Assembly: GCA_016748015.1 (NCBI GenBank)
Contig: JAAOMT010000753.1
Location: 1 to 26,614 of the forward strand
Direction of reading: 5' to 3'
DNA from: Geosiphon pyriformis uo1
Taxonomy: Eukaryota; Fungi; Glomeromycota
DNA length: 26,614 nt
The position numbers were made by a program, and so were the translations under genes. The notes below the pieces were generated by a model that ran no database searches, had not been told where the DNA came from, and was given only the letters and a program-made list of their open reading frames with translations. The first letter of the stretch is position 1; the number at the start of each line of letters is the position of its first letter. Positions 1-24,984 of the stretch are shown in pieces.

Positions 1-540
1 TCTACTTAAACAGGCTTACTGGGTGATTGATTTAATACACTTAAACAGACTAGTTTTTCAAAAAGTTCTTGGTTAACTTTACAAGAGATTATTAAACGTA
101 ATTAGACTTAATAGGGATTTTTCTATATTAATTCCCCTCATTATAACACAATAATTTCATTAAGATTGCATGAAATAAATAGAACTTATTCCAATAAAGT
201 CTCATAATCTAAAAATAACAATACTAATATTTCTATTTATTAAATCACTGAGCCTAAACCAAATAATATCCTATAAGAAAACATTAATGCAGGCAAGAAC
301 ATTAATTGTTTATTTCTATTAGAAATTTTTAAACGATTGCCAGCTAAATAAAATACATAATAAATGTTTTTGTTGATTTTAAGCTACCATTACTGGGCTT
401 TTGCATTTGAACCTCGATATTCACCAAAAGTGGACATAATAGTAAATTTTATTAGACTCTTGAACATTAATTAGCTTTAAACCCAGTCCGCTTACATAAA
501 TTAGTCAAAAAAATTAGGCACGACATGAAATTCTTAATAA

Positions 541-4440: not shown

Positions 4441-5079
4441 ATTACATTCATGTGACAACATAATAAGTGTGAAAATAAATCATGCATCACATTTACATGA
4501 CAATGTGAGAAATGAATTACGACCATAACCTGGCAATTTTTTTTTCAATCAAAAAAATTGCCCATTATGTAAACTTTGTTTCTCAACTTCCAGTGTGATA
4601 AAAAGCAACTTCCAAGATGTCAGACCTTGATAGAAAGGTAAGTGAGCCAGATGAGTGAAAAAGAAGCATAACCAGCACATCAGATTTAAGTAAAATAATG
4701 AGAAGCCGAATATAGAGATATTATTGCTTTTTTAAAAGAGTTTTTAAAATAAACTTATTTAAATAAATATATTATGTAAACAATATAAATTTTAGCTAAG
4801 TGTTTAGTTATGAACCAGTTTTAGAAATCTTGGAATTTTCTAGTAAATTAATTTTTAACAGAAATATAAATCAAACAGAAAAACAAAAAATTGAGTTTAA
4901 TAAAATCTAGATAATTTCTGTTGCATATCGCAAAGTGTTTTTTAATTATTAAGCCAAGTATAAATAATTATTATACAATAAAAAGTAAAATAAATTTTAA
5001 TAATCTTACAAAAACATTATTTTTATGTTATAAATTTAAATAATAAGCAAAAAGATAGCAAGCAAAAAAACTATTTAAA

Positions 5080-5550
5080 GTAATAAAAATAATTAAAAAA
5101 GTTAATTGAATTTGTAAAAATCTAAAATGCATTATTAATTTCAAAAAAATAAAAAATAGTTTATAATTATTAACAAATAACACTATTGCTATTATTTAAC
5201 AATTCTTAAAATCAATAATAAATATTTTTGTGCTTTTTAATTGTTTTTTTATTTAATAAATTACAAAAGCAAATAAATAACTTTTCAAACTAATTTTAAC
5301 ACTACAAATTAAGAAAAAAAATAAATTATGTAAATATTCACAATTAATTTTTTATTTATAGATATTTAAATACTTAAAAAAATTAAAAATTAAAAAAAAT
5401 ATTAAATATAGAAAAAATATTAAATATGTGATTATTGTATTTTATTTTTAGATCTATTTTAAACTTTATATTTTTTTATAGCTGAAAAATTTATTATTAA
5501 TATAGCTATTAAAAAATATTAATAACAAAGTTAACAACTAAGTTATTCAT
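5080..5550 (+). repeat. Highly decayed dispersed repeat, copy 1 (homologous to 21650-22160); possibly the body of the element starting at 4292
   Basis: Collinear shared blocks with copy 2, e.g. aaaaaatagtttataatt, ttgtg(c/t)tttttaatt(g/a)tttttttatt(t/c)aataaatta, atattta(a/g)atacttaaaa, gaaaaatttatt(a/g)tt(a/c)atatag(c/t)tattaaaaaa. Confidence 0.68.
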
Positions 5551-6650
5551 TAGATTATTAATTAGCTAAATAGTTACTATCTAAAATAAAGTAGCTAATT
5601 TCATAATGTTAAATAGCTAATATATATAATAGTAATAAAAACTATAATTTTTAATCATAATATTATTATTAATATTTTTCAATTTTATTTTTTAAAATAT
5701 AAATATTTTAAAACTTTAATTAAAAAATTAGTTAAAAAATTCATAGTTACTTTATTATAAATAAACAAAAATCTGTAAAAAAAAACCCAATTTGGTTTTT
5801 TTTCTTTTTTCTGCTATAATTATTAGCAAATTATTATCTATTTAAATTTACAAACAATATATATTGAAAGATAAAATAAAGAATTCAACAAAAAAAAGTT
5901 AAAACAGTTTAAAAAAATTACTAAAAAAACAACTTTTAAAATTGATATAAAGCAGTATATTAACTGTATATTCTATTCTAATACTGTTTAAAAATATTGT
6001 TCAATTATAAAATACAAATATTTACTTTTAACAGAATTAAAAAACTCATTAAAATTAAGTTTTAAAACTTATAATAACAAATTACTAAAGCAAAATAATT
6101 AAAATATGTTAAATAATATTACTAATAAAAAATTAATATTGATTTTGATAAAACTTAATCTTAAAAAAAAATAATGTTACTTAATAAAATTAAGTATAAA
6201 TTATTATCTAAATTATTATATAAATTAACTAATTATTAATTATAATATTTAATATAATATAATCTATGAATAATAATCAAAAAGACACATAAAATACAAT
6301 TGTATTTAATTTTACAAAATTATTTAAAAATTAATTTAAAAAGTATTTATTAACAAATAAAAAGTCCAATAATTTAATATTTATTTATAATTTAATTAAA
6401 ATTGACTTATTTTTGTATAATCATAAAAAATCTATACAATAATTATTATTTATAAAAAAAGTATCTAAATTATCTATTTATTTAATTATAAAAATATCAA
6501 ATTAAAAATTTTTTTATCATATTTTTTCATTTTTTAGTTTGAAAATTTTAATAAAATAACTAATTCTAGAATTGTTTATACAAAAAAATAAAATTATTTC
6601 TTTAAATTACAAAACTATATAATTAATAAATTTATAATTAATTGTTAAAA

Positions 6651-7030
6651 TATTATTTATTTATTTATTTTTATTACAAGTTTTACAAATAAAGTCCAAC
6701 TGCTATCTAGTACATAGAACCAAATTAAGTAGAATCAATTAAACACAGCTTACGCACAAACTACATGTGGCCAGCCACTTAGGCCAGACAAAGCAACACT
6801 ATACACCTATAATAACAAAAACATTATCACCTAAATCAGAGAAAAAACAACACAATTTGCACCTGCCAAACCTAATAGCAAAAGATTCTATAATACCAAA
6901 CATATGGACAACACCAGTTAACAATGTAGAAACTACACTGCTGGACAAGCCAAAAATCACACTATTATTTCCAACCAAGCCAGTCTTTTCTATTTTCACT
7001 CTATGCTTGGTCCTAACAGTCTATATACAA
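6651..7030 (-). mobile_element. 3' end of LINE copy 1: ORF2 C-terminus (stop at 6799-6801), 3' UTR and (TAAA)n tail
   Basis: Removing 7031-10399 and one TSD copy gives a continuous frame FVVELQHIC|I*TVRTKHRVKIEKTGLVG...VIIGV*. The minus strand ends cttgtaataaaaataaataaataaataata at 6651-6680. Confidence 0.88.
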
Positions 7031-8021
7031 TGTTACAAATAATTATTTGGGGTCTCAAATCAAATTACAAATCTGTAACTTGGTGCTCAATTGATATAAT
7101 TATGTTGGTTTTTAAAAGTGTTTATGAATCTGAAGATTTTGTTATTTGAAGATTTTGGTTGAATTCTTTGTATAATAGACAGAGATTTAATAGTTGTTTC
7201 AGTAGTCTTCCGAAATCACAATTCTATCAAATTTTTTTCTCTACATGGTGGCCAATAATCTTTCTGATAAGCTATTCTCAAATCTATGAGTATTCTACTC
7301 TTATTTCACAGGTTTTTTACTAGTCTCTATGATGTCTTGTAACTTCAGCACTTAATTTTTTACTCAATTAGTAAATAACAACAAAAGAAAAGAAATAAAA
7401 AAAAAAATATGAAATAAAAAATAAAAAATAAGCCAAGGCAATTCCAGTTAGTATTTTGTCAATAACTATGATCAAGAGCTATTGTTCTAGTATGGTTAAG
7501 TGTTAGATTTTATCAAAATAAAGTGTTAGATTTTATCAACATGAAGTGTTGATAAATAGAAGAGTAATTATATTTTCAAACAAATAACAATAACATAGAT
7601 TTGAAAAATTGGTCTTTTATTTATATAATTCTATTTTGGTTAATAGCAACTATCTTTGAAATAAGGGTTAATAAATAAAAAAGAAAGAGGATTGTTTTAA
7701 ATTAATAAAACTTTATTGAATTCTCCAAGAATTGCTTTTTCTGCTTTTAACACTCTCATTATATATATATAATTTATGTTATATGAGATTCCTTGAATTC
7801 CTCAATTCTCTAGCCAAAATTCTTGGAATTCCTAGAATTTTGCAATTCCTTTGAGAGAAATTCTGGAATTCTGGAATCCTGCAATTCCTCATATGAGAAT
7901 CCTGAAATTCCTGAAATCTTGCAATTTTTCTGAGAAGAATTTTAGAATTCTACATTTACTATGTCTCCTTCTGATTGGCTAATTTATATGTTAATATATT
8001 TCCTATATTCTATGAGTAATA
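7031..8021 (-). repeat. 3' LTR (991 bp)
   Basis: tgttacaaataatt...tatgagtaata; aligns end to end with 9431-10399 (21 differences in the first 180 bp by manual count). Confidence 0.95.
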
Positions 8022-8036
8022 TTATTCTCTCTTTTA
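8022..8036 (-). other. Polypurine tract (decayed)
   Basis: Minus strand reads AAAAGAGAGAATAA immediately before the 3' LTR. Confidence 0.65.
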
Positions 8037-8125
8037 ATATTGAGTTTCTGCAAAATCTTTTAAATCTCTTTTTTGTATCAATGTTGTTGCTGTAATTTTT
8101 ATTGTTATTTGTAAATTTAATTTTA

Positions 8126-8445
8126 TATGTGACTGGGGTTTTTAACTATAATAGTCTGTCTAGAATATCCATGTTCAAATCTTGTATCTGTATTATGTGT
8201 ATGTTCAGACATAATGTCCTCATTATTATCACTGAATTTAGTTAATTCCTGTTTTATTGTAAGATTTAGAAGTGTGATATATTGTTCGGTATTTGAAGTG
8301 GAGTTTGAATTGTTGTTGGCAGAGTTTGAATTGTTGTTGTCATTAGTGGAATTTGAATTATTGCTGTTATCAGTGGAGTTTGAATCAGGATTAAGTTCTG
8401 ATTCTAATTCCTATTTGTTTTTGCTGATTGACTCTTCTTCAAATA
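8126..8445 (-). pseudogene. Polyprotein relic: Asn/Ser-rich linker followed by a probable dUTPase N-terminus (motif 1)
   Basis: Minus frame (missed by the ORF track): ELESELNPDSNSTDNSNNSNSTNDNNNSNSANNNSNSTSNTEQYITLLNLTIKQELTKFSDNNEDIMSEHTHNTDTRFEHGYSR. Reversing C>T/G>A changes turns MSEHTHNTDTRF into MPERAHDTDAGF, the trimeric dUTPase P-x-R-A-x3-D-A-G-x-D-L motif. Confidence 0.55.
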
Positions 8446-8559
8446 TATAACACATGGGAGTGGATTGTGACTATGTCTCAATATTTTAACTCAGGGCTGT
8501 CAGGTGAGTTTTGCTGATTTATTGGTACTATGAGAATTAGGTTTTATTGGGCTATTGGA

Positions 8560-9300
8560 GGTAAGTTTTCTTGTATAATAACAAGGTTTGGAATTTATCA
8601 GACTTCGAATGTTGAGTTTTTTAATAATTCCCAAAGTTTGAATTGCTAAAGATTTAACAAGTTTTATTGATGGTAAGTTTTTTTGTACAATAGCAGGGTT
8701 GGAATTATTGGGCTTCGAATGTTTAGGTTTTTAAACAATCAGATCTTGAATAATTAGAGTTTAACGAGTTTTAACAAGTTTATCAAAGATAAGTTTTGAA
8801 TGTTCGGGGTTTTAATGATTGGGTTTTGAATAAACAGAGTTTTAATTTAACTTGTTTTAATGAATTTATCAATGATAATTTTTGAATGTTCGGGGTTTTA
8901 ATGATTGAGTCTTGAATAATTGGAGTTTTAATTTAACAAGTTTTTTAATGAATTTATCAATGGTAATTTTCAAATGTTTGGAGTTTTAATGATTGGATCT
9001 TGAATAATCAGAGTTTTAATTTAACAAGTTTTTAATAAATTTATTAAAGGTAAGTTTCAAATGTTTGGGGTTTTAATGATTAGGTTTTGAATAAATGGAG
9101 TTTTAATTTAATGAGTTTTAACAAATTTATCAATGGTAATTTTCAAATGTTCGGGGTTTTAATGATCAGATCTTAAATAATCAGAATTTTAATTTAATGA
9201 GTTTTTAACAAATTTATCAACAGTAAGTTTTGAATGTTCAGGGTTTTAATAATCAGGTTTTGAATAATCAGAATTTTTTAATTTAATAAGTTTATTAAAA
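8560..9300. repeat. Tandem array of ~87-bp units inside the LTR element
   Basis: Unit anchors (g/a)aatgtt(c/t)gggg at 8798, 8884, 8972, 9059, 9145, 9232 (periods 86, 88, 87, 86, 87), plus two more divergent units near 8607 and 8717. Confidence 0.92.
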
Positions 9301-9410
9301 ATAATAGTAAAATAAGGATTTTACGAATTCTAAGTGATTTTTTTTTGTTTTTTTTTGGTCTGCCACTTTCTCGTATGGTTGTTGCTGGTGCTGGTTTTCT
9401 GTTGGATTAT

Positions 9411-9428
9411 GCCTCACAGGGAGCACCA
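9411..9428 (-). other. tRNA primer-binding site (18 nt)
   Basis: Minus strand TGGTGCTCCCTGTGAGGC, 2 nt from the 5' LTR. It is complementary to a tRNA 3' end GCCTCACAGGGAGCACCA, resembling elongator tRNA-Met or tRNA-Ile(UAU) ends. Confidence 0.9.
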
Positions 9429-9430
9429 AA

Positions 9431-10399
9431 TATTACAAGTAATTATTTGAAGTCTTAAATCAAATAACAAATTCATAACTTGGTGCTCAATTGATATAAT
9501 TATGTTGGTTTCTAAAGGTGTTTATGAATCTAAAAATTTTGTTATCTGAAGATTTTGGTTGAGTCCTTTGTATAATGGACAAAGCTTTAATAGTTGTTTC
9601 AGTAGTTTTTTAGAATTACAATTTTATCAAATTTCTTTCTCAGTGTAGTGGCTGGTAATTCTTCTGGTAAGTTATCCTCAAATTTATGAGTGTTTTATCT
9701 TTGTTTCATGAGTTTTTTACCATTTTCTATGATGTTTTATAACTTCAGTGCTTAATCTTTTACTTAATTAGTAAATAACAACAAAAAAAAAGAAATAAAA
9801 AGAAAAGAAATAAGAAATAAGAAATAAGCCAAAACAATTCTAGTTAGTATTCTGTCAATAGCTATAATTAAGAACTATTGTTTTAGTGTGATTGAGTGTT
9901 GGATTTTATCAACATGAAATGTTGATAAATGGAAGAGTAATTATATTTTCAAACAAATGACAATAACATGAATTTGAAAAATTGGAGAAATTTTTTATTT
10001 ATATAATTTCATTTTAGTTGATAGCAACTATTCTTGAAATTAAGGTTAATAAATAAAGAAGAAAGAAGATTGTTCTAAATTAATAAAACTCTATTGAATT
10101 CTCCAGGAATTGTTTTTTCTGCTTTTAACACTCTTACTATATATATATAATTTATGTTATATGAGATTTTTTGAATTCCTCAATTTTCTAGCCAGAAATT
10201 TTAGAATTCCTGAAATCTTGCAATTCCTTTGAAAAGAATTCTGGAATTTGAGAATCCTGCAATTCCTCATATGAGAATCCTGAAATTTCTAGAATCCTGT
10301 AATTTCTCTGAGAGAAATCTTGAAATTCTACATTTACTATGTCTCTTTCTGATTGGCTAATTTATATATTAATATACTTCCTATATTCTATGAGTAACA
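9431..10399 (-). repeat. 5' LTR (969 bp)
   Basis: tattacaagtaatt...tatgagtaaca; homologous to 7031-8021; adjacent to the PBS. Confidence 0.95.
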
Positions 10400-13300
10400 A
10401 CAAATGTGCTGCAACTCCACCACAAATCTGATGTATTCCACAAGGGTCTGAGTAGCTTTTTTTTTTTCTTCAAAAACTAAAACAGCTTCAGCATATCAAT
10501 CTTTCATTACAAAACCCTTGTATACTGCTATATAAAGACTTATATCCGAATAACATAATGAGAGTGAAAACAGAATAGCAGATAGAGATGAATTCGAAAG
10601 ACCAGACATTGACATCTATTTTTTAGCAGCTTCAACCAAAATGTTTCTGCAGAGATTAGAGTTGTCAGAACAAGTAAAAACATGATCAAAAAACTCTATC
10701 TTACCATACAGCAAGCACAAAACACTAGGATAACTCCTGTTATACAATTTTTTTCTAACTGCAACTGGCAGCCGTTTATATACAGTCTTTATCAAATATG
10801 TGTGTAAATTGGCTAACTTTTTACTAGTAAACCCAGAAAGCATGTGTGAATTAGGATACCAAATTGTCACAGTAGCATCCCAATCTATTTTCTTAACCAT
10901 AATATTTGAAACTATATTAAAACTTAGACCAGTCTCCCAATAGATACAGCATATTGACCAGTGTAAGTTCTGAGCAAAATGACAAATATTGCCAGATATA
11001 GCAGTTTTCTCAGTGACCAGAAATCTCTTCCAGATTTTAACTGGTAAAGAAAGAGATGAGGAAGCAGTCTCATTAGCCAGCACATTAGCCCTTATGTTGT
11101 CTAATACATCTAAATGTCTTTTAACTTTCACTTACTTAATTGAAATATTTTTATCTTTAAGAAAATTGACTATCTGTAATTGTTTGATCCAACATTGGTT
11201 ATGGAAGTCAGGTGTAGTTGAAGAAGCCTCGGAAATACAGACATCAATTGTCAATTAACTATCTGAGTACAAAATTACTGAACATAAAGATAGAACACAC
11301 TCCAAAGCCAATACCACAGCTTGCAGTTCAGTTAAAGTAGAGGACAGAAGTCCAGTGATCTTAACTCCAATGTTTGCATTTGCAGCCAGAAAGTATGCAG
11401 CTGTTCCACCTGCCACTTCAATAGAACCAGCACATCTTAAGAACTCATCTGTATAAACTTTAATACAATTAGACTACACCTCCAGTAAACTATCACAAAT
11501 CTCAGAAAACCTATCAGAATCCAAAACACTCAGCACATCTTCTTTAGTAGCAGCAGCAGCTCTGACCTCCAAAGAAACAGAATTGGTCATAAAATCAAAT
11601 ATTAAAGAAAACCAGTAAGGCACAGAGCTCCTCGGGTCCAATTGTTTCCAATGCCAAAATGTTTTCCAGTCTATCACCTTTCTTTTCTTGTCAAGAATTC
11701 TATCACCAAAAGCAACACCAAAATGTTTCAATAAAAAAACGGATTTGTAATACAAAGACTAATCCAGAATACCAGATATTAGAAAATCACCAGATTTACA
11801 AAAGACACAAGGTAAATTGTTCACTAAAGATAATTCATTCTCCAAAAAAATTTTCACCACCTTTGCCAAAAAATTGTTCAAAAGACTAACATGCAACTTA
11901 ACAGAAAATTGCAAAGAATTCAAAAGATACCATCCCAAAACTTGCAAATCCCAAAATCTATGATCAAATAAATGTTCAAAAATGCCATGGCCATTAGAAA
12001 ATAAAATTAGTGCCACCAGCTTTTTTTCAGACTGTATTTGTTCAAAAAGCTTCAAATTATATAAAAAAAGGTGGTACAAGATCTTACTGAGAAAGTCACG
12101 CAGTAAACTAGCTTTGGCTCTAAGACTTTTTCTAATCATAATATCCCATTTACAACACACATCTAAAATAACAAAACTGAACTGTATACGATAGCTAACA
12201 ATGGGTTGCAAAACTGCCAAAACCAAATAACAGAATTGTTTGTCTGTAATAGCTTTTCTTAACACTATATTAAAAAAATCTGACATTCTTATAAGCTTGA
12301 GCCAAACTGGACTTAGAAAGACCCTTAGTTGACAGGAAAATACTCAAATATTGGTATAATTTACCCTTTTTAGCAATCAAAATTGGCAATCTATCAATTA
12401 ATAGCAAAGCATTCTTAACTCTCTGATTGATAGAAATTGCTACTGTTTTATTATTATTAATTAAGATGTCATTGATCACAAAAAATTTACTTGCAATGTT
12501 TAAAATATACTGCGTAAATGTCTGACTACTTCCAACCCAAATTGTATTATCAACAAAAGTGTCTGCAGCCAAAAAAAAACTATTTTTTCACTCACTTCAA
12601 TTTTGCCAGACTTTGCTACAAACTTAGAATCAATCCTATACTCACATAAGTGCTCATGTCTTTTTACTTCACACAAAAATGGATCATAAAATATCCTTCA
12701 AAGCAATAAAGAAAAAACCTTCCCTTAATCTAACTCATCATGTACTTTATAACTATCTGAAAGCCCAAAGTCAGTCATTATTTTGTTGATCCAGTCCCCA
12801 TGAATGTTGCCAAAAAATTAGATGAAACATTTACAAATTTTGATGTGATGCAAGCTTGCATACAAATGATACCAGCCTACTGAATCATAAGCTTTGCACA
12901 TATCCTGCAGCATTAACCAAAGCTCTCTGTTTTTCTCCAGAGCATCTTTAATGGCTAAGCCAATAGCAAAAATAAGAGACTGAGTTGAAGTACCTTTCAA
13001 CACTGAAAAATTGTTACCACAAAGAACATTAAATTTGCTACAAACCAAAGATATCCAATCAGATAAAATTTTAAATAGTATTTTACATGCTGTTTTGACT
13101 AATGTAATAGATCTAGTATTTGTTAAAACACTATTTTACTCATAAGGTTTTGGAATCATTGAAACCCATGCTTTTTTTCACAGATTAGAAACTGTATCCA
13201 TACTTAAACACAAATTTAACAATTTCAAAAGACAGGCCAAAACTTCCCTACCACAATACTTCCAAAGTTTATTAGGTATCTCTGATAACCTGGCTGCTTT

Positions 13301-14860
13301 ATTGTTTGGCAAATTATCAACAACCAAAAACAATTCTTCTATACCAATCTCATTCATTATATTAGAGAAAGCATTATCATCCACATAATTTAAAGGCATA
13401 TATTGTCAAGACCAAAGATCAGATATCTTTGAAAGAACTGATTGTTTCTTTGTTCACTCTTCCATAATTTTATTAACCTTGAGTTTTACTTCATTAGGCT
13501 CAATCACCAGTTCATTATCCACTACCAAGTGATCCAAAACCACTTTGCAAAATGGATATTCCAGAATGCTCTTTATTATTTTCCCTTTGTTAGAACAAAA
13601 GTTTTCTATATAATAGTCAATTGCTTTCTTTATAACAGTATCCTCAGCAACCTTAAACTTGCAATACTTGGACTTACGATATCTTTTCTTTATCACTCTC
13701 AAATGTTTAATCAACTCTATCAAGCTCACACTGTTCAAAACTATGCCATTAACTTTGGAAGCTTTGACTATATCAATAGTCAACCAGATCTTAATAAGGC
13801 AGTTCAAATTTAAGAGATTACCAAAGTTTCAATATTTTGCAACTTTTGCAACAAACAGTTCTAATTTAAAAAATTTGGAAGATTGTTTATTCTTCAAACA
13901 GTCATATTTACTATACTAAATTCTAAATAAAACTGTGTCAACAGCTTGTACTATGGCCTCTTCCAACATTTTTTACATTGTATTCAAGTTATCATTGACT
14001 TTTGCCTTCTCAAACATGTCCGACCTAGCCAACAACTTGGCAAAAAAGCAGTCTTTAAAGCTTAACTATTGAATATTATCTGCATTCTTTAATTTGAACT
14101 TTCACCAATCTCAGTTGGCTTGTCTGTGAATGCTAATAAGATGTGTATTCAGCAGCCCACCCAAACCAATTGAAATGAAAACTGACTTATGATCTGTATC
14201 AAAAAACTTAGACACACCATTAACAGAATACAATATCATAGCAAATGCCAAATTCCTACTCACTAAAATAAAATTAATCACTTTCTCAACACCTTTAGAA
14301 TTGTTTTAGGTAGAAGTCTTGGCCAATAAGTGTCCATCAAAAGTATTAACCAGGCTTAAACCCAAACAAAACTTGAAACTTATACTTTTGCCAGACCTAT
14401 TTTCATTAAAATTACCACCCAAAACCACAAAAGAGCTAAAATTGACCACCTTGAAAACCATAGAATTGATATCAACAGCTTGACTAAATTGTGTGCCAAT
14501 AGATGCACCAGCATATAGACTCAAAATCATAACAAAAAGCTTGTTTTTGAACAGAAGACACACAAAAATCAAATGACCAGAAATTTCATTCACTTTTGAA
14601 ACATGCTAAGCCAAAGAATTGTTCATAATTATGGCAACTCCAGCACCACGAAACCCAACATCCAAACCAGAAGTAAAAATCTGAAGTCCATCAAACTTAT
14701 TCATAATTCAAGGTCTAATAACAGATCTTAATTTTGTCTTAGTAACAATCAAAATCATATTTCCCAAATCCTTATGCCAACAAACAATGTCTTCTTGTAT
14801 AGCTAAATTTAACATACTCCTGACATTGTACATAGCTATTCTCTAAATGAGCTCACTCAT
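10400..14860 (-). pseudogene. LINE ORF2 pseudogene: APE endonuclease, reverse transcriptase, RNase H, C-terminal zinc finger
   Basis: APE: IAMYNVRS, VTKTKL, LGGNFN, DTDHK. RT: PNNKAARLSEI, LQDMCKAYDSVGW, TFVDNTIWVG. RNase H: VYTD (11458), ELQAVVLALE, YSDS, KVKRH..LDNIRAN. Zinc finger: CLLYGKIEFFDHVFTC. Confidence 0.93.
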
Positions 14861-16384
14861 TGATACAAAGAATGCACCAAAAAACCTGAATTTATGCACA
14901 ACAGATCTAACTTCCCCAAGATTGAGCCAATAGAAACTTTGAGAGCCATCATTTTAGATTTCAAACCACCAACTTTGAAGGTAAGAACTTTTGAACTACT
15001 CAAACCCAAATCTACTACTTTGTCTTCTAATACCAAAAAAGAGAGAGAAAAGAACAACTAAGAGACATCCAAAACTATATTAGTATCTGGTAATGCCAAC
15101 ATAGAAACAGGAGCAGCTGGAAGTACAACTTAAGTAATAGACACCAGGAGTACCAGCTTCACACCATTTAATCTACACACAATATTTGACACCTGATTAG
15201 CTAGTAATTTTAAAGAACATTTCAGTAAAGCTGGACAATTATTGATTAAGGATTTATTTTGAACAACTGGTGCACTTCTCTTAATACTTAAAGAACCAGA
15301 AGGAAAAGAACCAGACCCAAAACCAGAATTGAAATGAGGCCCACTAGATGGAGAGACAAGTAAGACCACTTGCGCCCAAGATTTGCCACCAAAGACAGCA
15401 GGTCTAGAAATAGAAACACTCTTTTTTGTGTACAATTTCACCAGCTGGAGATGATGGTCAACTGAAGAGACTCTTTTAACAGGTCTTGAGGACTTAAAAA
15501 TGGGCAGAGTTAATGTATCACACTCCAAAACAGAATGGCCAAAATACCCACATTTTTCACAGCAAACCAAGTTTAATTTAGCCCAAGATAATTTAACATC
15601 ACCAAATATCAGCTTAGTGTGATAAGCAGACTCCAAATTCTCCTCAGATCTGAAACCAACTACAGCACAGCATACCTGGTTGCCAGAATTCATTGAGTAA
15701 TTAATAACACAGGTTTTTCCACCAGCTCCATTCAAAAGAGTGCTCAAATTATGAGCAGTTGTTCCCACAGGCAAAGTAAACAGCAATGCTCTGAACCTAT
15801 CTCTTAATGTCCAAGTCTCACAATCACTCACAGTCATGGCCATATGCACCAAATTTTTACCAATCAAGAAGAACCATTTAGCAGCCAATTGTTTAGCCTG
15901 ATCTAATTCAGCAAATTCTACCACAGTTTTTTGCCATAATCCAATAAGTTGAATTTTGATCGACATAATTTCACCAAATTCAGCTAGTGCAGCGACGATC
16001 ATATCTTTTGGCATGTTTATGGAAATTTTTTTGATGACCACAACCTGATCTGAACAAATTCCTTGTCTCTTAAGATCAATATTTACAACAATCTCTTTTT
16101 TCTTGGCCAATAACATGGTTTTCTCCATGCTGCTTTCTGATGTGAAGGTAGATCTGATAATTTTTTCAAATTTTGAGGGAGTAATGGGCCCCCCAAAACC
16201 ATTGACTAATGAAAAAAATTTTCTAACAAATTGAGTTTTTGCCATTGCTGATTTCCTTTCTACAGTTGAAAGATTAATATTCAAAGCAAACAACTTTTTG
16301 ACTAACACTTTCATAGAAGTCTTGATGACCTTTGGGTCAATCCACTTTTTTTCAAGAGAAATAGACAAGCAAGAAGAGAGTACA
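14857..16384 (-). pseudogene. LINE ORF1 pseudogene (RRM-like domains, single CCHC knuckle, C-terminal coiled coil)
   Basis: ORFs 15130-16368 and 14857-15057; VVVIKKISINMPKDMIVAALAEFGEIMSIKIQ...VVEF (RRM-like); CEKCGYFGHSVLEC (CX2CX4HX4C). Homologous to 22532-24267. Confidence 0.9.
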
Positions 16385-17762
16385 ACTTAGTTAAACTCTC
16401 TTCATAGACAGGCTAATAAAAATTATTAGAAGTTTGATTTCAGAGGTGCTGACAATGGTAAATAGAAAAGTTTTGAAGATGCCACTTTAGCCAATGCTGG
16501 AATATTTGCCAATGAGTTTACTGCTGCTGTACAACTCTCAGATTTGGATATTATGTGGGATGTTTTGTGTAAAATATTGACTCTTTTAGCTAATGAGATA
16601 TTTAAGAAGAAATGGTTTAAGAATTTTGATGGAGTTTTCACCAGAGATTCCTTGAGGTTTCATAGGCTAGAGTTGCTGGTGTCTAAGCTGGTTAAGGCTT
16701 CTTGCTTGGTCTCTAGTGTAGAATTTGCTTCATTATTGGATATGTGGTATGGGTTTGATGCTAATAGTGCATCAGTGGTAAAGTCTTTATTTCTTTCAGG
16801 TTCTAATTTCAACATGATTTGCTCGGCTTTGGCTAAAGTGAGGAAATCTTACTGCTCTTCTAAGTTGCTGGAATCCAGGTGGGCTGAAAAAACATGTATC
16901 AAGACAGCAATTAATAAAAAATGGAAAGTTTTAAATCAGATAAGAGTCATACCATTAGAAGTGTTTTGGAGCACCCCTTTCACAAGGTGGTATTGGATTA
17001 TCTGGTTGTAGGTAACGAATTGGTATTGGAGCCAAGCTTAGTTAAATCTAGGGTAGATAAGATTATGGAAGGTTGGACCAGAAAGTGCAGAGTTATGCCT
17101 GACATTTCAGATGAATGATCATGCCAATACCAGTCTCTGGAGTATGTTTTTGATAGTGCTTTTTCTGACATGATGTGTCTTGTTAGTGTTGATGAGTTGC
17201 TTGGTGTGATTTCTGATCTCCTCGAAGATAAAACTACTGGTTTCTCTGAGATTTTGAATAAACTTTGGAAACATTGTAATAAATCAATTTTGGATATGCT
17301 TTTGGTGCTTTTAAACTCTTGTTTAATCTGCAAATCAGTACCTGGTGCTTGGAAGGAAGCTTGGGTATCAATGATTCCTAAGCTGTATGAATGGGATAGA
17401 ATTTTCATGAACACTCAACCTATTGCTTTGATTGAAACTGTCCACAAGATTCTTTCTAAAATTCTCTCTGATAGAATCTCATCAGCATGTAGTACTTTTG
17501 ATGTTTTGTGTGGAGAAAATTTTTCAGTCCTAAAGGATACAATAACACAGTCACCCATTTTTGCCATTGGTTCAGTGGTTGAAGATGCTTTGGAGAAGGG
17601 TTGTGAACTCTGGTTGGTCTTGCAGAACATGCAAAAGGCTTATGATTCTGTTGGGTGAGAGCATCTTTGAAACAGTTTGGTTAGGATAAAGATGTATAGC
17701 AGATTTATTAGATATTTTGGTAGTATTCATAATGATTGCATCAATAGAATAATGACAGATTT
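16385..17762 (+). mobile_element. LINE ORF2 fragment (post-APE linker to RT N-half), second subfamily ('piece B')
   Basis: T*LNSLHRQANKNY*KF...SVLEHPFHKVVLDYLVV...WKEAWVSMIPK...TQPIALIETVHKILSKIL...LQNMQKAYDSVG*...RIMTDF. Homologous to but clearly diverged from ~12770-14150 (-). Confidence 0.93.
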
Positions 17763-17821
17763 TCGATTTTGTATAATATTGGCCTGTATATATTTTTGAA
17801 AATATTAATTTATTGTTGTAG

Positions 17822-18706
17822 AAGCAAAATCAACAAAATCTTGAGAGGCCTTTTGATGAGAATAGCTTTGAACTACTAAAAAAGTCTGATGATTTAAATA
17901 CATTAAGACTTTCATTGTATTATATAGAAAAGTCTGCTGAATTTCACAAAAAAATAAGATTAATGTTTTTATTTAATTCATTCTAAGTTTGATTGCTAAC
18001 TTTTAAACCTATATTTCTTTATTATATAACCTATAGAGAATCAACTTCTGATCAAAGCAATTATCTTTTAGGAAAAAAAGAAGATGTTGCTTTTAATAAG
18101 GAACAAACAATAAAGAAGCAATGTCAAGTTGGAAATACTATGCCATTTTCACTAAATAAAAATGAACAAAATGCAGATTTTGCTGTTGAACAGGATATGG
18201 ATAACATGTATTACCAAGAGCTGTTGTTAGTTGAGGTTTGAAATCTCTATCTTTTAAATATTTTATTATTGTCTGTTATTAATAAATCTTTATTTCATAA
18301 TAGATTTCATGAAATTTGGCTATCAAAATGTATATTAATAGTGAAAATGCTATTGCAAAATATCGGATTTTATTTTTACTAGAAGATAATATTTATAGTC
18401 TAATTAAGTGCTTATTTAACAATGAAGAGTGATCAATAATAGAATTGAACTAGAAAAAGGTTTTATTTTTTATTTATTTTTAGTTTATTTTACTTTTGTT
18501 TTAATGCAGATATTATTTATAGGTTGCAGATTTGCTTTCCCAGATTGATGAGAATAAAATTATTTTTAAAGAAGTATAGCAAGTGTATAAAAGATGCCAC
18601 CATCAATTGTTATGCTGACCTAAACAAACTCAAAGGCATCATTTGTAAAAACCCATTTGAAGATCAGCATTTATATCTGTTCAAAAAAAACTATTATTTT
18701 GAATGA
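17822..18706 (+). pseudogene. Decayed multi-exon gene of unknown family
   Basis: Alternating coding-like blocks and T-rich introns with tag acceptors (~17821, 18036, 18303, 18522), gt donors (18237, ~18460) and a GCTAAC branch-like site at 17995. In-frame stops are present. Confidence 0.45.
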
Positions 18707-18799
18707 GTACAATTAATATATAATACTTTGTAAGAAACTTAAGCATTTTCTATGATTTTTTATTTAACTAATATACTAATATACTACATTTTTCCTTAA

Positions 18800-19420
18800 C
18801 CCATTGTTTTAATTGTACAATATTTGAGAGTTGTAAATTATATTGACAAAATTTAACTTCAACATATGACTAAAAATTTTTTATTGAAGTAATATTAGAA
18901 TTTTGTGCTAATTAAGGAAGTAATTCAACATTTGAAAAGATAAAAAAAAGAATGCACAACTTTTAATGTGTAAATTGGTATATTGTTTTTCTAAAAAAAA
19001 ACTTTTTTTTAGTTTTTTTGCATGAAATTTTACCATAGAAATTGTATAATTAGCCAAGATTTTATAGTTTATAACTTTAATAATATAACCAATCAAAAGA
19101 ACTAAAGAATCCAAACCAATACATAAAAAACATTTTCAAAACATATGACCAAAGCTTTTTCTAACTGTGGCTGCAATACAATTCTTATAAAACTCTTTAG
19201 AAGATTTATGTTATATACATTCAAATTTTGTAATTTTAAATTGTATATATGTAGATTTATCTAACCAAACAATTCATTTAAAATTATCTTCTGTCCAATT
19301 TTTATAAATACAAGTTCATTGTAAAGATTTTTCTTTATTTGATTAAAAAATTAATAGCTTGAAACAAAAAATACATGAGTGAAGTCTTTTTTAAGCTAAT
19401 CCATTTTAAATAGTTTATAT
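18800..19420 (-). pseudogene. Tc1/mariner (IS630-like) DD34E transposase remnant
   Basis: Minus strand: WTEDNFK*IVWLDKST (=VWSDES), CIAATVRKSFGHMF*KCF, F*KNNIPIYT (=FQxDNAPIHT), VELLP*LAQNSNITSIKNF*S (=WPAQSPDLNPIENxW). There are 103 nt between the second D and E positions, i.e. 34 codons + 1-nt slip. Confidence 0.8.
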
Positions 19421-21649
19421 AAAAATAGATTTGTTGATATCTTTAATAAAATTCAATTATATTTGAAAAAGAGTTTAGTAGTAAATTTTTTTATTTTCTA
19501 TTATTAAATATTTGAATTGTTTATATACATATTTGTCAAGAATTTGTGGTTAGTTTGTTTATTTTTAGGAAGTTTTTTTTAGCTTATATGACTTTATACA
19601 TATATTATAAAAGAATGTAAATATTCAATAGTTGTAAAAATTTTACTGTTTGTATATTCTAACTTTTTTGGTATTCAAAAAGTTTTTTTTCAAGACACTT
19701 TTAATGTAGTAAATTTTTTTATGACAAAAATGTTTAATATTTTATATATACACATATAATCTACTATTGTGTTTTACAAAAACATTATTTATGTTGATTT
19801 GTAGATTATAACTATAAGTAATTATAAAAAAAATTATGGTTTAAATTGATAATAGTATTACAATATATAGCCTTTTTTATATATTATATTAAGTATTCAA
19901 TGCTTTTTATATCTTCCTGTATGTTATTTAGATTAAGCAAAAATTATATAAAATTAAATTTTTTATTAAGACTTATAAAATATTCTATTGAACTATTTAT
20001 TTTTAAATATGTAGTCTTTGTTTGTCTGTATAAAAGTGTAATTTTTAATTACTTAATTAAAAAAAATAGATAAAAAAACACTTAAAATATAACAAATAAA
20101 AGGTTTTTAGTCTTATATTATTAAAAAATATAGTTATTTAATATTTAATATTTTAAAAAATAGTAAATTGTATTCAGAATCTCAATACTAAACCTGTTGT
20201 TAATTACTTTCAATTTGACTTTTTAATAAAAATAGACTTATAAAAAGTCATTGAATTTGAACTTGTAATATTTTTTATAGTAACAAAAGTCTTATTTTTT
20301 GTAGAAAAATTGTTCAAGCTTTTTTCATCTTTAATATATTTTCTAATTACACAATACATAATTTTTGTTATGTATTTATCTTATTCTAGCATAAAAATTA
20401 TCTTAAAAGCCAATAGTTTGCAAAATATTCTTGAAATTTTAAAGAAAATTATTCATGTGTTTAATTAAGAGACTATTAATTCACTCTGTTTATATAAAAT
20501 TGCAAATAACATATATGTAAAAAATAAATATTGTAAATTTGTTCTAATAAAAAGTATATATAATGTAAAGTTAAATCGAATTTTGCTAAATTGGTTTATA
20601 AAATTATATAAATATAATATTAATAAGCAATAATATTTGAATTATATTGAGAATAAAATAAATTATCATACATATAATAATAGTTATCTTGCATCTTGTT
20701 TTTTTTATCTATTAACTGTTTTTAAGCTTCTTATAATAACAATATTAATTAAGTTTAATAAATATTATTAATAGATGCTAAGATATACACATTAATTTAA
20801 TGTTTATAAAGTTTGAATTGTGTATTATATATATACAGACAATTTTATTGAAAATTTTTTTTGGCAGTTTAAACTATTGCAAAAAAAGTGTCTAAATATT
20901 ATGCACTTTTAACATGACTTGAAATTTAAAAATATAAGAATAAATACCATATTAATAAATGCCTTTGATGTTTTTAAGATAATTCTAAATCAATAAGTTA
21001 TATTATAACTTTAATGACAAATATTATATTAATTAATTAATATAATAAGATTTGTAAACATAAAATATAATTTCAAGATACATTATACTTATTTTTATAA
21101 TGCCAATATTAAAATAGTTATTTTTATAAAAAATTCAAATTTGAATTACAAATTAAATAGTTTATTATATAATTTTATTACATATATATTTGGCAATCTA
21201 AAAAAATTCAATGAAGTATATTTAGCATATGCTCATCACTTAAAAATATAGAATGCAAATGTATATTACTCAGCTATAATTGGGATAAAGTTCTAAGTTA
21301 ATCTAAAAAAATCGGAATAAAAGTTAGTTTTAAGCTTAATACTATAGAAAATTTGTTATATTTAGTTAATTACACAAATTAATAAAAACATTAAATTTAG
21401 GTTTTTGGTCGAAATAATTGAACAGTTCAATTGTTTTTATGTATATTAATTTGAGATTATGTTAATTACATATTTTTGAAAAAGTTTTTGTTTTTTCTTA
21501 TTTATTTATATACATTATTTTTTTTACAAATTTTTTAAGACTTGTAGTTTTAATAAAGATATATCTATAACAAATTAGTAAAAAAATTATTATTAATTTT
21601 AATATAAATTATAATATTTTTTATAAATAACAAAGTAAAAGATTATTGA

Positions 21650-22160
21650 AAATAATAAAAATAATTAAAAAAAAATTTATTTAAAAAAACAAATTGAATT
21701 TATAAGAATTCAATATGCATAATTAGTTTTAAAATTACAGTTACTTAATTTTTTGTAAAATTTAAAGATAAAAAAATAGTTTATAATTGTTATTAAAATA
21801 ATACTGTTGTTATTATTTAATGCATTTTTAAGTAGTTTTTAAAATTATTTACAAGTATTATTGTGTTTTTTAATTATTTTTTTATTCAATAAATTATAAG
21901 AACAAATAAATATTTTTTTGGCTAATACTAACAATACAAATTAAAAAAAAAAAGATAAAATATATAAATTCCAACAAAAAATTTTTTATTCACAAATATT
22001 TAGATACTTAAAAGTAAAAAAATTAAAAAAATAGAATAAGCAATATAAAAAAAAGTATTATTATATTTGTTATCTAGATTTTATATTTTTTTATAACAGA
22101 AAAATTTATTGTTCATATAGTTATTAAAAAAAATTAATAATCAAATTAATAATTAAATTA
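21650..22160 (+). repeat. Highly decayed dispersed repeat, copy 2 (homologous to 5080-5550)
   Basis: See copy 1; similarity stops just before the LINE 5' end at ~22185. Confidence 0.68.
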
Positions 22161-22313
22161 ATAATTATACTAAAATATATATGAAAAACTCTCTCTTATC
22201 AATCCCCTAACCATGATAAGAGCGAATTTTACCAAAGTCTTAATTAGTTTTTTTCCCTTTTACCCTCTATTTTCTTTCTAATTATTCCTTCTGATTTTTT
22301 TCCTTTTGTTGTA

Positions 22314-24267
22314 ATAAAACTGGTAGGCTTCTCTGCTGGTGGTTTAGTTCTGTTTTGGCTGGATTGGAGACCCAGTCTAATAATAAAAAGAAAGTGCAAG
22401 TTGAAAGTGTATACTTTTATGGTTTTTCATATAAGAAATCTAAAATTCCTGGAAATGCTAGTGGTGTGGTCAATTTGTCAGCTGGTTCTATTCTTGGCAA
22501 TGTTTTACAAGCTGGCAATTTGGAATGAAAGATGTCTTGGGGCAGCAAAATAGAGAGCAAGGATGCTAATGTTAGTGGGACATCTGACTTGAAAAACATG
22601 AGTAATATGGTGGCAGAAAAAACAAGTTATGTAGACTCCAACGATTTCAAAGCTGATAATATGGTAGATAATATGACTTCGAAGAAGACACAAATGAGAA
22701 CATATGCTCTAAGACAACTACCAAAGAAGCCTTCTTTCAATGTTATGAATGACGTCAACAATGTTTTGGAACTTCTGTCTCCCAAGTTTCAAGGTTCCAA
22801 TCAGCTGCCAAGTGCCAAGTCATGTGTTCTGGAAAAAATGAGCTTTGAGCCAGTAAAATCATTTGCATTAGATATTGAGCTTTTGGTTGTTCTAGGGAAA
22901 AATGTTAGTGAGAAATTGATTTTAATTAAAAAAATTTTTTATTAAGTAGATGGTTTTGGGAGAGCTTTTACTTCCTCAAAATTTCCAGGGATCATTAGAT
23001 CCTCCTTTACTTCTGAGTTGAGTTTTAACAAAGCTAAGAAATTGGCAATTCATGGGAAGATTTTAGTAAATAATAATGTTAAAAAGTTGAGTATTTGTTC
23101 AAATCAGGAATAATTGTCAAGGAAATTCCAGTAAATCTTCTCAGATCAACAGTTGAGTCAGTTTTTGCTAAGTTTGGTAAAATTGTGTCTATCAAAATGC
23201 AATTAATTGGTTTGTAGCAGAAAGCTTTGGTTGAGTTTGAATCACCAGAGGTGGCTAGTTTGGTTGCTTCTAAATGGTTTGTTCTTATGGGAAAGAATTC
23301 TGTATGGATGGTATTGGCTGTTGAAGATAAACAATTGTGAGTGTTCAGAGATCAGCATAAGGCCTTACTCTATACTTTGCCAGTTGGCACTACTGTTCAT
23401 GATTTGTCTGGTTTACTTGATTTATATGGTAAGAAGACCTGTTTTATTGGTCACAATCCTAGTTCTTATGTCTGTAACAGATGTGCTGTGGTTTGTTTTA
23501 CTGATAAGGAATCAAAGTTGGCTGTGATTAGTTCTAATCCAGTTTTTAAGAATGTGAATTTGCGATGGACTGGTCTTTCTCTGGCTTATTGTGCCAAATA
23601 CAAACAAATTGGTCACATCTCTGATGTATGTTCATCTGGTGAGATTTCTGGGGCTTGTGGGAAGCGAGTGGTGACTGACTGAAATCAAGTTTGTCTGACT
23701 GATATTTATAAGAAGAAACAAGCTCCCATTGCCTGTTCAGTTTCTTTTGATAGTAGAACTTGGGCTCAGATAGCTGGTAGTTTATTTTTTCATGTGGCTT
23801 CTTCGGTTCTTTTTGGTGCCAGTCTGTTTCTTGTTGCTAAAACCTCTCTATTTGCTTCTGCCTTGTCTGATGATCGTGACATGTATGATTGTTTGGCTTC
23901 TTTGGAACACTCTCTGAAACTTTTGGCTGATCAGATTTCTGGTATTTTGGAGAAATTGGGTTCCATAAAATTGGTGTCTTTGGCAACTACATCTGATGCT
24001 TCTCTCTCAGCAGTTTCAGTGTCTGTGGTTTCAGGTTTGAACTTGGATATAGTATTGGATGGTGCTCTAATGATTCCCAATTTTTCTTCTCCTGTTATTG
24101 GTGATACAACTCTCATTATAAGTTCAAGTAATTCTAAAGTTTTGACTACCAAAGTCAGTAGTTTAGAATCTAAGATGGTGGCTTTGGAAATCTCAGTTGA
24201 ATTTGTTTTGGAAAAATTGGATTGTTTGTGCTCAGATTTAGGTTTGTCAGCTGCCTCTATTTCTTAA
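22314..24267 (+). pseudogene. LINE ORF1 pseudogene (piece A)
   Basis: SFALDIEL, KALLYTLPVGTTVHDL, CAKYKQIGHISDVC (decayed CCHC), LEHSLKLLADQISGILEKL. The start is inferred at an ATA (ex-ATG) at 22314. Confidence 0.85.
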
Positions 24268-24984
24268 TGAGTGTTTTGGTTTGGAAGATTGCCACATACA
24301 ATATAAGGGGCATGAACAATCTTGTAAAACAAGATAATATAATTTGTTGGCATAAGGAGACAAACAATTTAATTTCTATCATTACTGAGACTAAATTAAA
24401 GGGTAAAATTTGCTCATGAATTATGAATAAGTTTGATGGTGTCTGGGTGTTTATCTCTGGTTTAGATTCTGGTTATGTGAGCTCTGGCATTGTGATTGTC
24501 ATGGACATTTTTTTGACAAGACATGTGTACAAAGTTTCTAAGGTGCCTGGTCAGCTCCTGTCTATTAAGTTGCTTTTCAAAAATAAATTTTCTGTGTCTA
24601 TTTTGGGGCTATATGCTGGTGCTTCTTCAATGGTTTGGTTTTCTCAGGCTGGTGAAGTTAATTCTCTTATTGCTAAGGCTGTTAATAAATTTTCTTTTAT
24701 TGTTTTGGGTGGTGATTTCAATAAGGACGGTTTGTGTAAGAGGGCAAGTTTTAAAAGATGTTTAGACTTAGAGCTGGTCAATTTTTTGTCAGGTAGTCTA
24801 GTCGTAAAAAGTCCTACATAAGAAAATTTGAGAAGTGTGAAAAAACAATAGATTTCGTGTTAGTTTCATCTAATTTGGTCAATACAGTAATAGATCACAA
24901 TGTTGTGGATGTGAGTGAACATTTTAACACTGATCATTGGGCAGTTTTTGTTTCTGTGGGCTTAGGTGGTCTGCTGGATACTCA
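24267..24984 (+). pseudogene. LINE ORF2 APE endonuclease domain pseudogene (piece A)
   Basis: All main APE motifs in order: xNxRG, TETK, GDFN, IDF, TDH; internal stops at Trp codons. Confidence 0.92.

Follow-up and report, generated by a model that had tools for sequence, protein, structure and literature searches.

Two halves of a LINE in swapped order beside a low-copy repeat unit of Geosiphon pyriformis, best read as a small complex rearrangement

Chromoanagenesis, whether by chromothripsis-like shattering or by fork stalling and template switching (FoSTeS) or microhomology-mediated break-induced replication (MMBIR), leaves clustered breaks, fragments rejoined in either orientation, loss of fragments, and junctions with 0-4 nt of microhomology. 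Long interspersed nuclear elements (LINEs) are typically 5'-truncated and joined by microhomology at their 5' junction, and their endonuclease-independent insertion can patch broken DNA. Alternative transposition of Ac/Ds elements yields permuted and duplicated products. Circular DNA intermediates have been described for human segmental duplications, where the order A-B is reversed to B-A and the outer junctions carry short microhomologies (PMC7450558), and for the KIT alleles of colour-sided cattle, which arose by translocation and duplication via such intermediates (PMC12235870). Here we analyze a contig of the fungus Geosiphon pyriformis uo1 (JAAOMT010000753.1; 26,614 bp, all of it analyzed and hereafter called the window) that contains two pieces of a LINE, A and B, in swapped order on the same strand. 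We find that the swapped order is real and beyond chance, and that the explanation to be preferred is a small complex rearrangement in junk DNA.

Five intact copies of the same subfamily (loci L001-L005; fetched loci are numbered with L and contigs with C) were used as rulers for A and B. Against these five, B aligns over 16385-17763 and A over 22159-24984, with identities of 80-86%. In the intact copies A runs continuously into B. In the window B lies upstream and A downstream, so that the swapped, same-strand arrangement proposed in an earlier note on this DNA was confirmed against all five rulers. Piece A closes with the letters ...GGATACTCA at position 24984, and piece B opens with ACTTAGTTAAAC at 16385. 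Self-comparison of the window showed that both pieces are ~65% identical to a minus-strand LINE at 10400-16388, L1(-), and this homologue is, as the earlier note had seen, uninterrupted through the point equivalent to A|B, near 14140. The left end of A, previously placed at 22185 or later, was revised: two sub-groups of copies stop being mutually homologous 665-697 nt before the anchor in open reading frame (ORF) 1, which corresponds to window 22159-22190. Piece A is 5'-complete, beginning there at the natural 5' end of the family, and its junction with the adjoining segment X' is therefore a natural insertion junction.

A and B are assigned to a non-LTR retrotransposon (LTR, long terminal repeat), that is, a LINE. 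In their relatives Pfam returned RVT_1 (E 1.4e-9, in L003), RNase_H (E 8e-6 and 7e-12) and, in ORF1, RRM_1 (E 9e-4); Pfam gave no match on the decayed LINE fragments of the window itself and detected no endonuclease domain. In L003 the RVT_1 match straddles the point at which B ends and C, the 3' part of the element, begins, and the right end of B thus cuts the reverse transcriptase domain. C (~2.7 kb, with the rest of the reverse transcriptase and the RNase H domain) is absent from the window. Throughout the 128-Mb assembly of 792 contigs the LINE family has thousands of candidate members, and no second copy of either A or B was found in the genome at more than 87% identity.

Whether the two pieces come from one copy was addressed with trees of 16 full copies, with support from the Shimodaira-Hasegawa-like approximate likelihood ratio test (SH-aLRT). 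Window-A was placed beside L002, a copy in C645, with an SH-aLRT of 90 and an end branch of 0.10. Window-B fell in the same unresolved grade, where its nearest relative by path is again L002 (end branch 0.11). The nearest relative and the divergence proposed as a check in the earlier note therefore agree between the two pieces. This is moderate evidence that A and B were one copy, and moderate only, because the tree of the subfamily is star-like. A scan for breaks at the A|B point covered 23 fetched copies of the family and 5 from other subfamilies. All but one of the 23 are continuous across the point, the remaining copy being broken ~165 nt upstream, and the five copies of other subfamilies are continuous as well. 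None of the 27 inspected copies breaks at A|B, which is thus not a breakpoint hotspot. The chance that two breakpoints on a ~7-kb element fall within 5 nt of each other is ~1e-3 per pair.

The right-hand neighbours of B and A, T and U, are the two sides of a low-copy unit, F. At C498:1-2307 (L009) the unit has the order reverse-complemented T, a spacer S of 1,078 bp, and U, with T and U divergent, and it recurs inverted at C498:47034-49034 with a spacer of 1,050 bp. T and S are contiguous in C435, S and U in C380. The T core of the unit covers 17764-18487 and extends to 18786, and the start of T and the first 200 nt of U have only ~4 genome copies each. The left edge of U is an internal break, since the copies in C380, C433, C435 and C498 extend upstream into S and downstream past 26614. 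Spacer S (about 1.05 kb) is absent from the window. In the ancestral unit the right neighbours of B and A would thus have lain ~1 kb apart. For two fragments with no connection to each other, such closeness of their neighbours is very unlikely.

Several copies appear to start at 17764 and 24988, and these positions were considered as transposon termini; this was rejected, as the copies run on into S. The spacer itself contains a repeat unit of ~100-110 bp, present twice in C498 (L009:92-330) and as a longer tandem array in C435 (L015:3218-4310), and a pair of ~40-nt inverted repeats resembling a miniature inverted-repeat transposable element. The two units on C498 form a large inverted repeat, ~45 kb apart. 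Pieces related to F cluster on the small contigs C380, C433, C435 and C392.

Three junctions delimit the rearranged pieces: J1 between L1(-) and B, J2 between B and T, and J4 between A and U (Table 1). Each is unique in the assembly, with no second locus spanning any of them, and no ORFs spanning the junctions are on record in independent assemblies. At J1, nine other copies of the L1(-) family match through 16388 (...ACAACTT) and then continue into a conserved 5' sequence that the window lacks; the microhomology is 4 nt, and of the letters in the overlap the A at 16389 alone belongs to B without ambiguity. J2 is blunt: intact LINEs go on with GGTTTGA..., and the relatives of T are preceded by other sequence, the spacer S. 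At J4 the copies of U in C380 and C498 extend upstream, and C380 reads ...AATCAAAGAAAAAATATC across the point, so the TCA at this junction can be U's own.

The earlier note had described a 5-nt overlap between A and B that differs by one C>T. The letters are as described, but ACTT is also L1(-) family sequence and TCA is also found in U, and the overlap is ambiguous, amounting to at most 1-5 nt. Moreover, the family is polymorphic at this point (ACTCA versus ACTTA), and in the five intact copies one or the other occurs only once per copy, followed by GTTAAAC. Because the family varies in this way, one clean break and two microhomology joins suffice for both the overlap and the C>T, and neither a staggered cut nor a mutation is needed to explain them. 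The motif GTTAAA occurs at 6644-6649 and again at 16390-16395. It is a possible target duplication of L1(-), with a probability of ~5% by chance in AT-rich DNA, and it conflicts with ACTTA belonging to B. L1(-) may have been a pre-existing element that broke, or a reverse-transcribed patch bridging two ends. Within 16385-24984 no near-identical repeat was found, the best matches of this block elsewhere being 85-90% identical, and hence nothing in the block would drive a repeat-based misjoin.

Table 1. Coordinates of the features of the window, in order of position.
Feature	Position	Strand	Basis
3' end of the minus-strand LINE L1(-)	6650..7030	-	(TAAA)n-like tail at ~6650-6680; family copies align over 6663-7026, running on into the body in C648
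LTR retroelement relic nested in L1(-)	7031..10399	+	self-BLAST, sequence inspection, contiguity arithmetic against C648
L1(-) body, 5'-truncated at 16388	10400..16388	-	other subfamily, ~65% identical to A/B
Junction J1, ACTT with which L1(-) ends and B starts	16385..16388		microhomology
Piece B, internal 1.38-kb LINE fragment, linker to mid reverse transcriptase	16385..17763	+	83-85% identity to intact copies over exactly that range
Junction J2, end of B to start of T	17763..17764		without microhomology; candidate circle-closing or direct-religation junction
T, one side of low-copy unit F	17764..18786	+	87-94% identity to C435, C498 (twice), C433, C392
1.15-kb high-copy repeat	18787..19923		>1200 first-look candidates, 80-85% identity
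AT-rich DNA, no further copy detected	19924..21622		genome comparison
550-bp AT-rich high-copy repeat M, abutting the LINE 5' end	21623..22167		~1100 first-look candidates, 75-81% identity
Piece A: complete 5' untranslated region, ORF1, first part of ORF2	22159..24984	+	80-87% identity to intact copies
Junction J4, TCA common to the end of A and U	24982..24984		microhomology
U, other side of unit F, running off the contig end	24985..26614	+	87-97% identity to C380, C433, C435, C498

Four colinearities (A-B, X'-A, T-X', and reverse-complemented T-S-U) were observed directly, as were the three junction sequences, and the four fit a single linear ancestor without conflict. As one joint explanation, which we hold to be somewhat better than even on these comparisons, the window records either a local multi-break rejoining or a circle with its closure at 17763|17764 and its reopening at A|B. 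A and B would be parts of one old LINE insertion, lying reversed beside a copy of unit F in the ancestral order C<-B<-A<-X'<-T<-, followed by S and finally by U->. About five breaks, within roughly 10 kb or more, would have fallen inside L1(-) and at B|C, A|B, T|S and S|U. End joining with 0-4 nt of microhomology would then have reconnected the ends into three new junctions, with B (1.4 kb) and A-X'-T (7.2 kb) each flipped in place, L1(-) joined to the start of B, and both S (~1.05 kb) and the LINE 3' part C (~2.7 kb) lost. In the circular route an excised circle of B-A-X'-T, sealed at 17763|17764, would have opened at A|B and been reinserted beside its origin, giving an identical product. In four other copies of the unit a single spacer separates T from U, so that one locus seems to have been both donor and acceptor. 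We infer in addition that T and U derive from one copy of F, that all three junctions go back to a single event, and that the contig is correctly assembled.

The two routes fit equally well and are indistinguishable from sequence alone. The earlier note had proposed a circular DNA opened inside the LINE and integrated, with 17762 as the candidate closing junction. The topology does fit closure at 17763|17764 and reopening at A|B, and the outer junctions do carry microhomology, but a direct multi-break rejoining accounts for the same structure without a free circle. Features expected of a circular intermediate are found: the abutting segments are reversed in order on the same strand, J2 joins the outer ends of the ancestral segment, and the junctions show microhomology only. 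Features of a chromothripsis-like event are likewise found, namely clustered inferred breaks, inversion of B and of A-X'-T relative to U, and absence of S and C. A more specific version, in which a small extrachromosomal circle consisting of the LINE 5' half and 4.4 kb of flank went through one round of copying or cutting that began at the microhomology-primed end of a broken LINE, and was then reinserted 1 kb from its origin, is possible but doubtful. If so, the window would hold a fossil of reintegrated extrachromosomal circular DNA (eccDNA), possibly bridged by LINE reverse transcription; to our knowledge, eccDNA reintegration has not been described in this early-diverging fungal lineage.

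Several points weigh against this joint explanation. The window is an entire 26.6-kb contig of a 792-contig assembly, and its junctions are known from the assembly alone. Two separate copies of F may have supplied T and U. An intact allele representing the state before the event, or a copy of F bearing the LINE, was not found among the F copies inspected. Five breaks in a single event are elaborate. Finally, if GTTAAA is a target duplication of L1(-), which is possible, J1 would be the product of ordinary LINE insertion, and an older junction would have existed at that place.

Each of the rival explanations leaves part of the evidence unaccounted for. An artefact of assembly or amplification, in which chimeric or template-switched molecules created a B...A order that does not exist in the fungus, is unlikely. 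It would suit a window that is a whole contig, begins in a repeat 99% identical to C551 and ends in U, and it would suit the lack of any independent record of ORFs spanning the junctions; random chimeras, however, would use neither one LINE position for two junctions nor pair B and A with both sides of one 1-kb spacer, and the block offers no near-identical repeat that could mislead an assembler. The repeat in question, at window 1-452, matches C551:91813-92265 at 99% identity and C778 at 97%; as a young repeat it probably explains the assembly break at the contig start. Alternatively, a LINE with a large insertion (A-insert-B) could form a tandem or circular unit, of which the contig would be a permuted read-out, with the insert ending in U on one side and in L1(-) on the other and with a duplication junction at 17763|17764. 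The topology agrees with this, and short contigs often are collapsed tandem units, but the contig ends are not continuous: the sequence that follows U in four other copies is not matched at the start of the window. Nor do A, B, L1(-) or the junctions recur above family-level identity, and the adjacency of T and U in unit F would be left as a coincidence. We consider such a permuted unit quite unlikely.

That A and B derive from two copies of a burst-like subfamily truncated by coincidence at one place is very unlikely. The star-like tree makes the common lineage weak evidence, and with thousands of windows screened an event of 1e-3 is expected somewhere, so chance alone is a real risk; the common lineage of A and B and the link between T and U argue otherwise. 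Coincidence would have to produce breakpoints within 5 nt, in the same orientation and on end branches of the same length, in a family with no other copy broken at A|B, and next to a T and a U that lie 1 kb apart in a unit of only ~4 copies. Serial events would also give the observed map. Reasoned from that map, an inversion from A|B to S|U would yield J4 and a second, from B|C to T|S, would yield J2, the two sharing breakpoints, and a deletion or an insertion of L1(-) exactly at the start of B would follow; the candidate GTTAAA duplication is what an ordinary insertion of L1(-) might leave. Such a series is highly improbable, as three hits on the A|B point within 0-5 nt are required, and L1(-) has to land exactly on an older junction. 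The earlier note had also offered alternative (sister-chromatid) transposition from an element formerly inserted at A|B, which was considered here for a DNA transposon and in its reversed-ends form as well. The 5-nt overlap could mimic its target duplication, but microhomology accounts for the overlap, and no transposon termini stand at either outer junction, J1 or J4: the break in U is an internal one, and L1(-) is a retroelement truncated at its 5' end. This proposal is largely refuted. Twin priming and template switching by the reverse transcriptase were rejected as well, since L1(-) and B are of distinct subfamilies and run in opposite sense, and U does not represent a retroelement terminus.

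The joint explanation by local rejoining or a circle places the window close to the described systems, with differences from each. It resembles the cases with circular intermediates in its abutting segments of reversed order, an inner junction made of the outer ends of the donor, and outer junctions with microhomology or none. It differs from them in size (8.6 kb versus hundreds of kb) and in that no donor copy is kept; moreover, donor and acceptor are apparently one locus, ~1 kb apart, the block is inverted relative to its old neighbour, and a free circle is unnecessary. Clustered breakpoints, both orientations, lost fragments and 0-4 nt of microhomology are shared with chromoanagenesis, whereas the event in the window is very small, lies in a repeat region of a fungus, and is ancient (~10% divergence since the LINE inserted), and it is a single inferred event. 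As in the patching of breaks by LINEs, L1(-) lacks its 5' part and joins B at 4 nt of microhomology, but its 3' flank consists of unrelated AT-rich DNA rather than the end of A. L1(-) could at most have bridged two different DNA ends, and it cannot account for J2 or J4.

The window as a whole (contig C301 in our numbering) has a GC content of 13-38%, is fungus-like and not human in character, and is filled with nested repeats. Between B and the LINE 5' end, the gene relic and the Tc1 relic named in the earlier note were not confirmed: Pfam gave no match on the ORFs of 17764-22158, and the 1.15-kb repeat at 18787-19923 showed no terminal inverted repeats. The LTR relic that separates the L1(-) 3' end from its body has LTRs at 7031-8019 and 9431-10399 that are 84% alike, with TG..CA ends and a 4-bp target duplication, ACAA. 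Its internal part is only 1.4 kb long and contains a tandem array at 8553-9302. Repeat M, directly upstream of the LINE 5' end, has another copy in the window at 4984-5552. A copy of M also lies upstream of the LINE in L002, and its presence beside the LINE 5' end there too suggests a possible target preference or 5' extension.

The kind of rearrangement is already known, and the window is an interesting example of it, neither a new mechanism nor a functional element. If real, it would be a complex rearrangement described to the base pair in the repeat compartment of a Glomeromycotina-type fungus, with states before and after the event that are reconstructible from repeat copies. The use of broken transposable element (TE) copies as rulers would serve as a template for scans for the signature of circular intermediates. 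It would also mean that microhomology end joining reshuffles such TE-rich regions.

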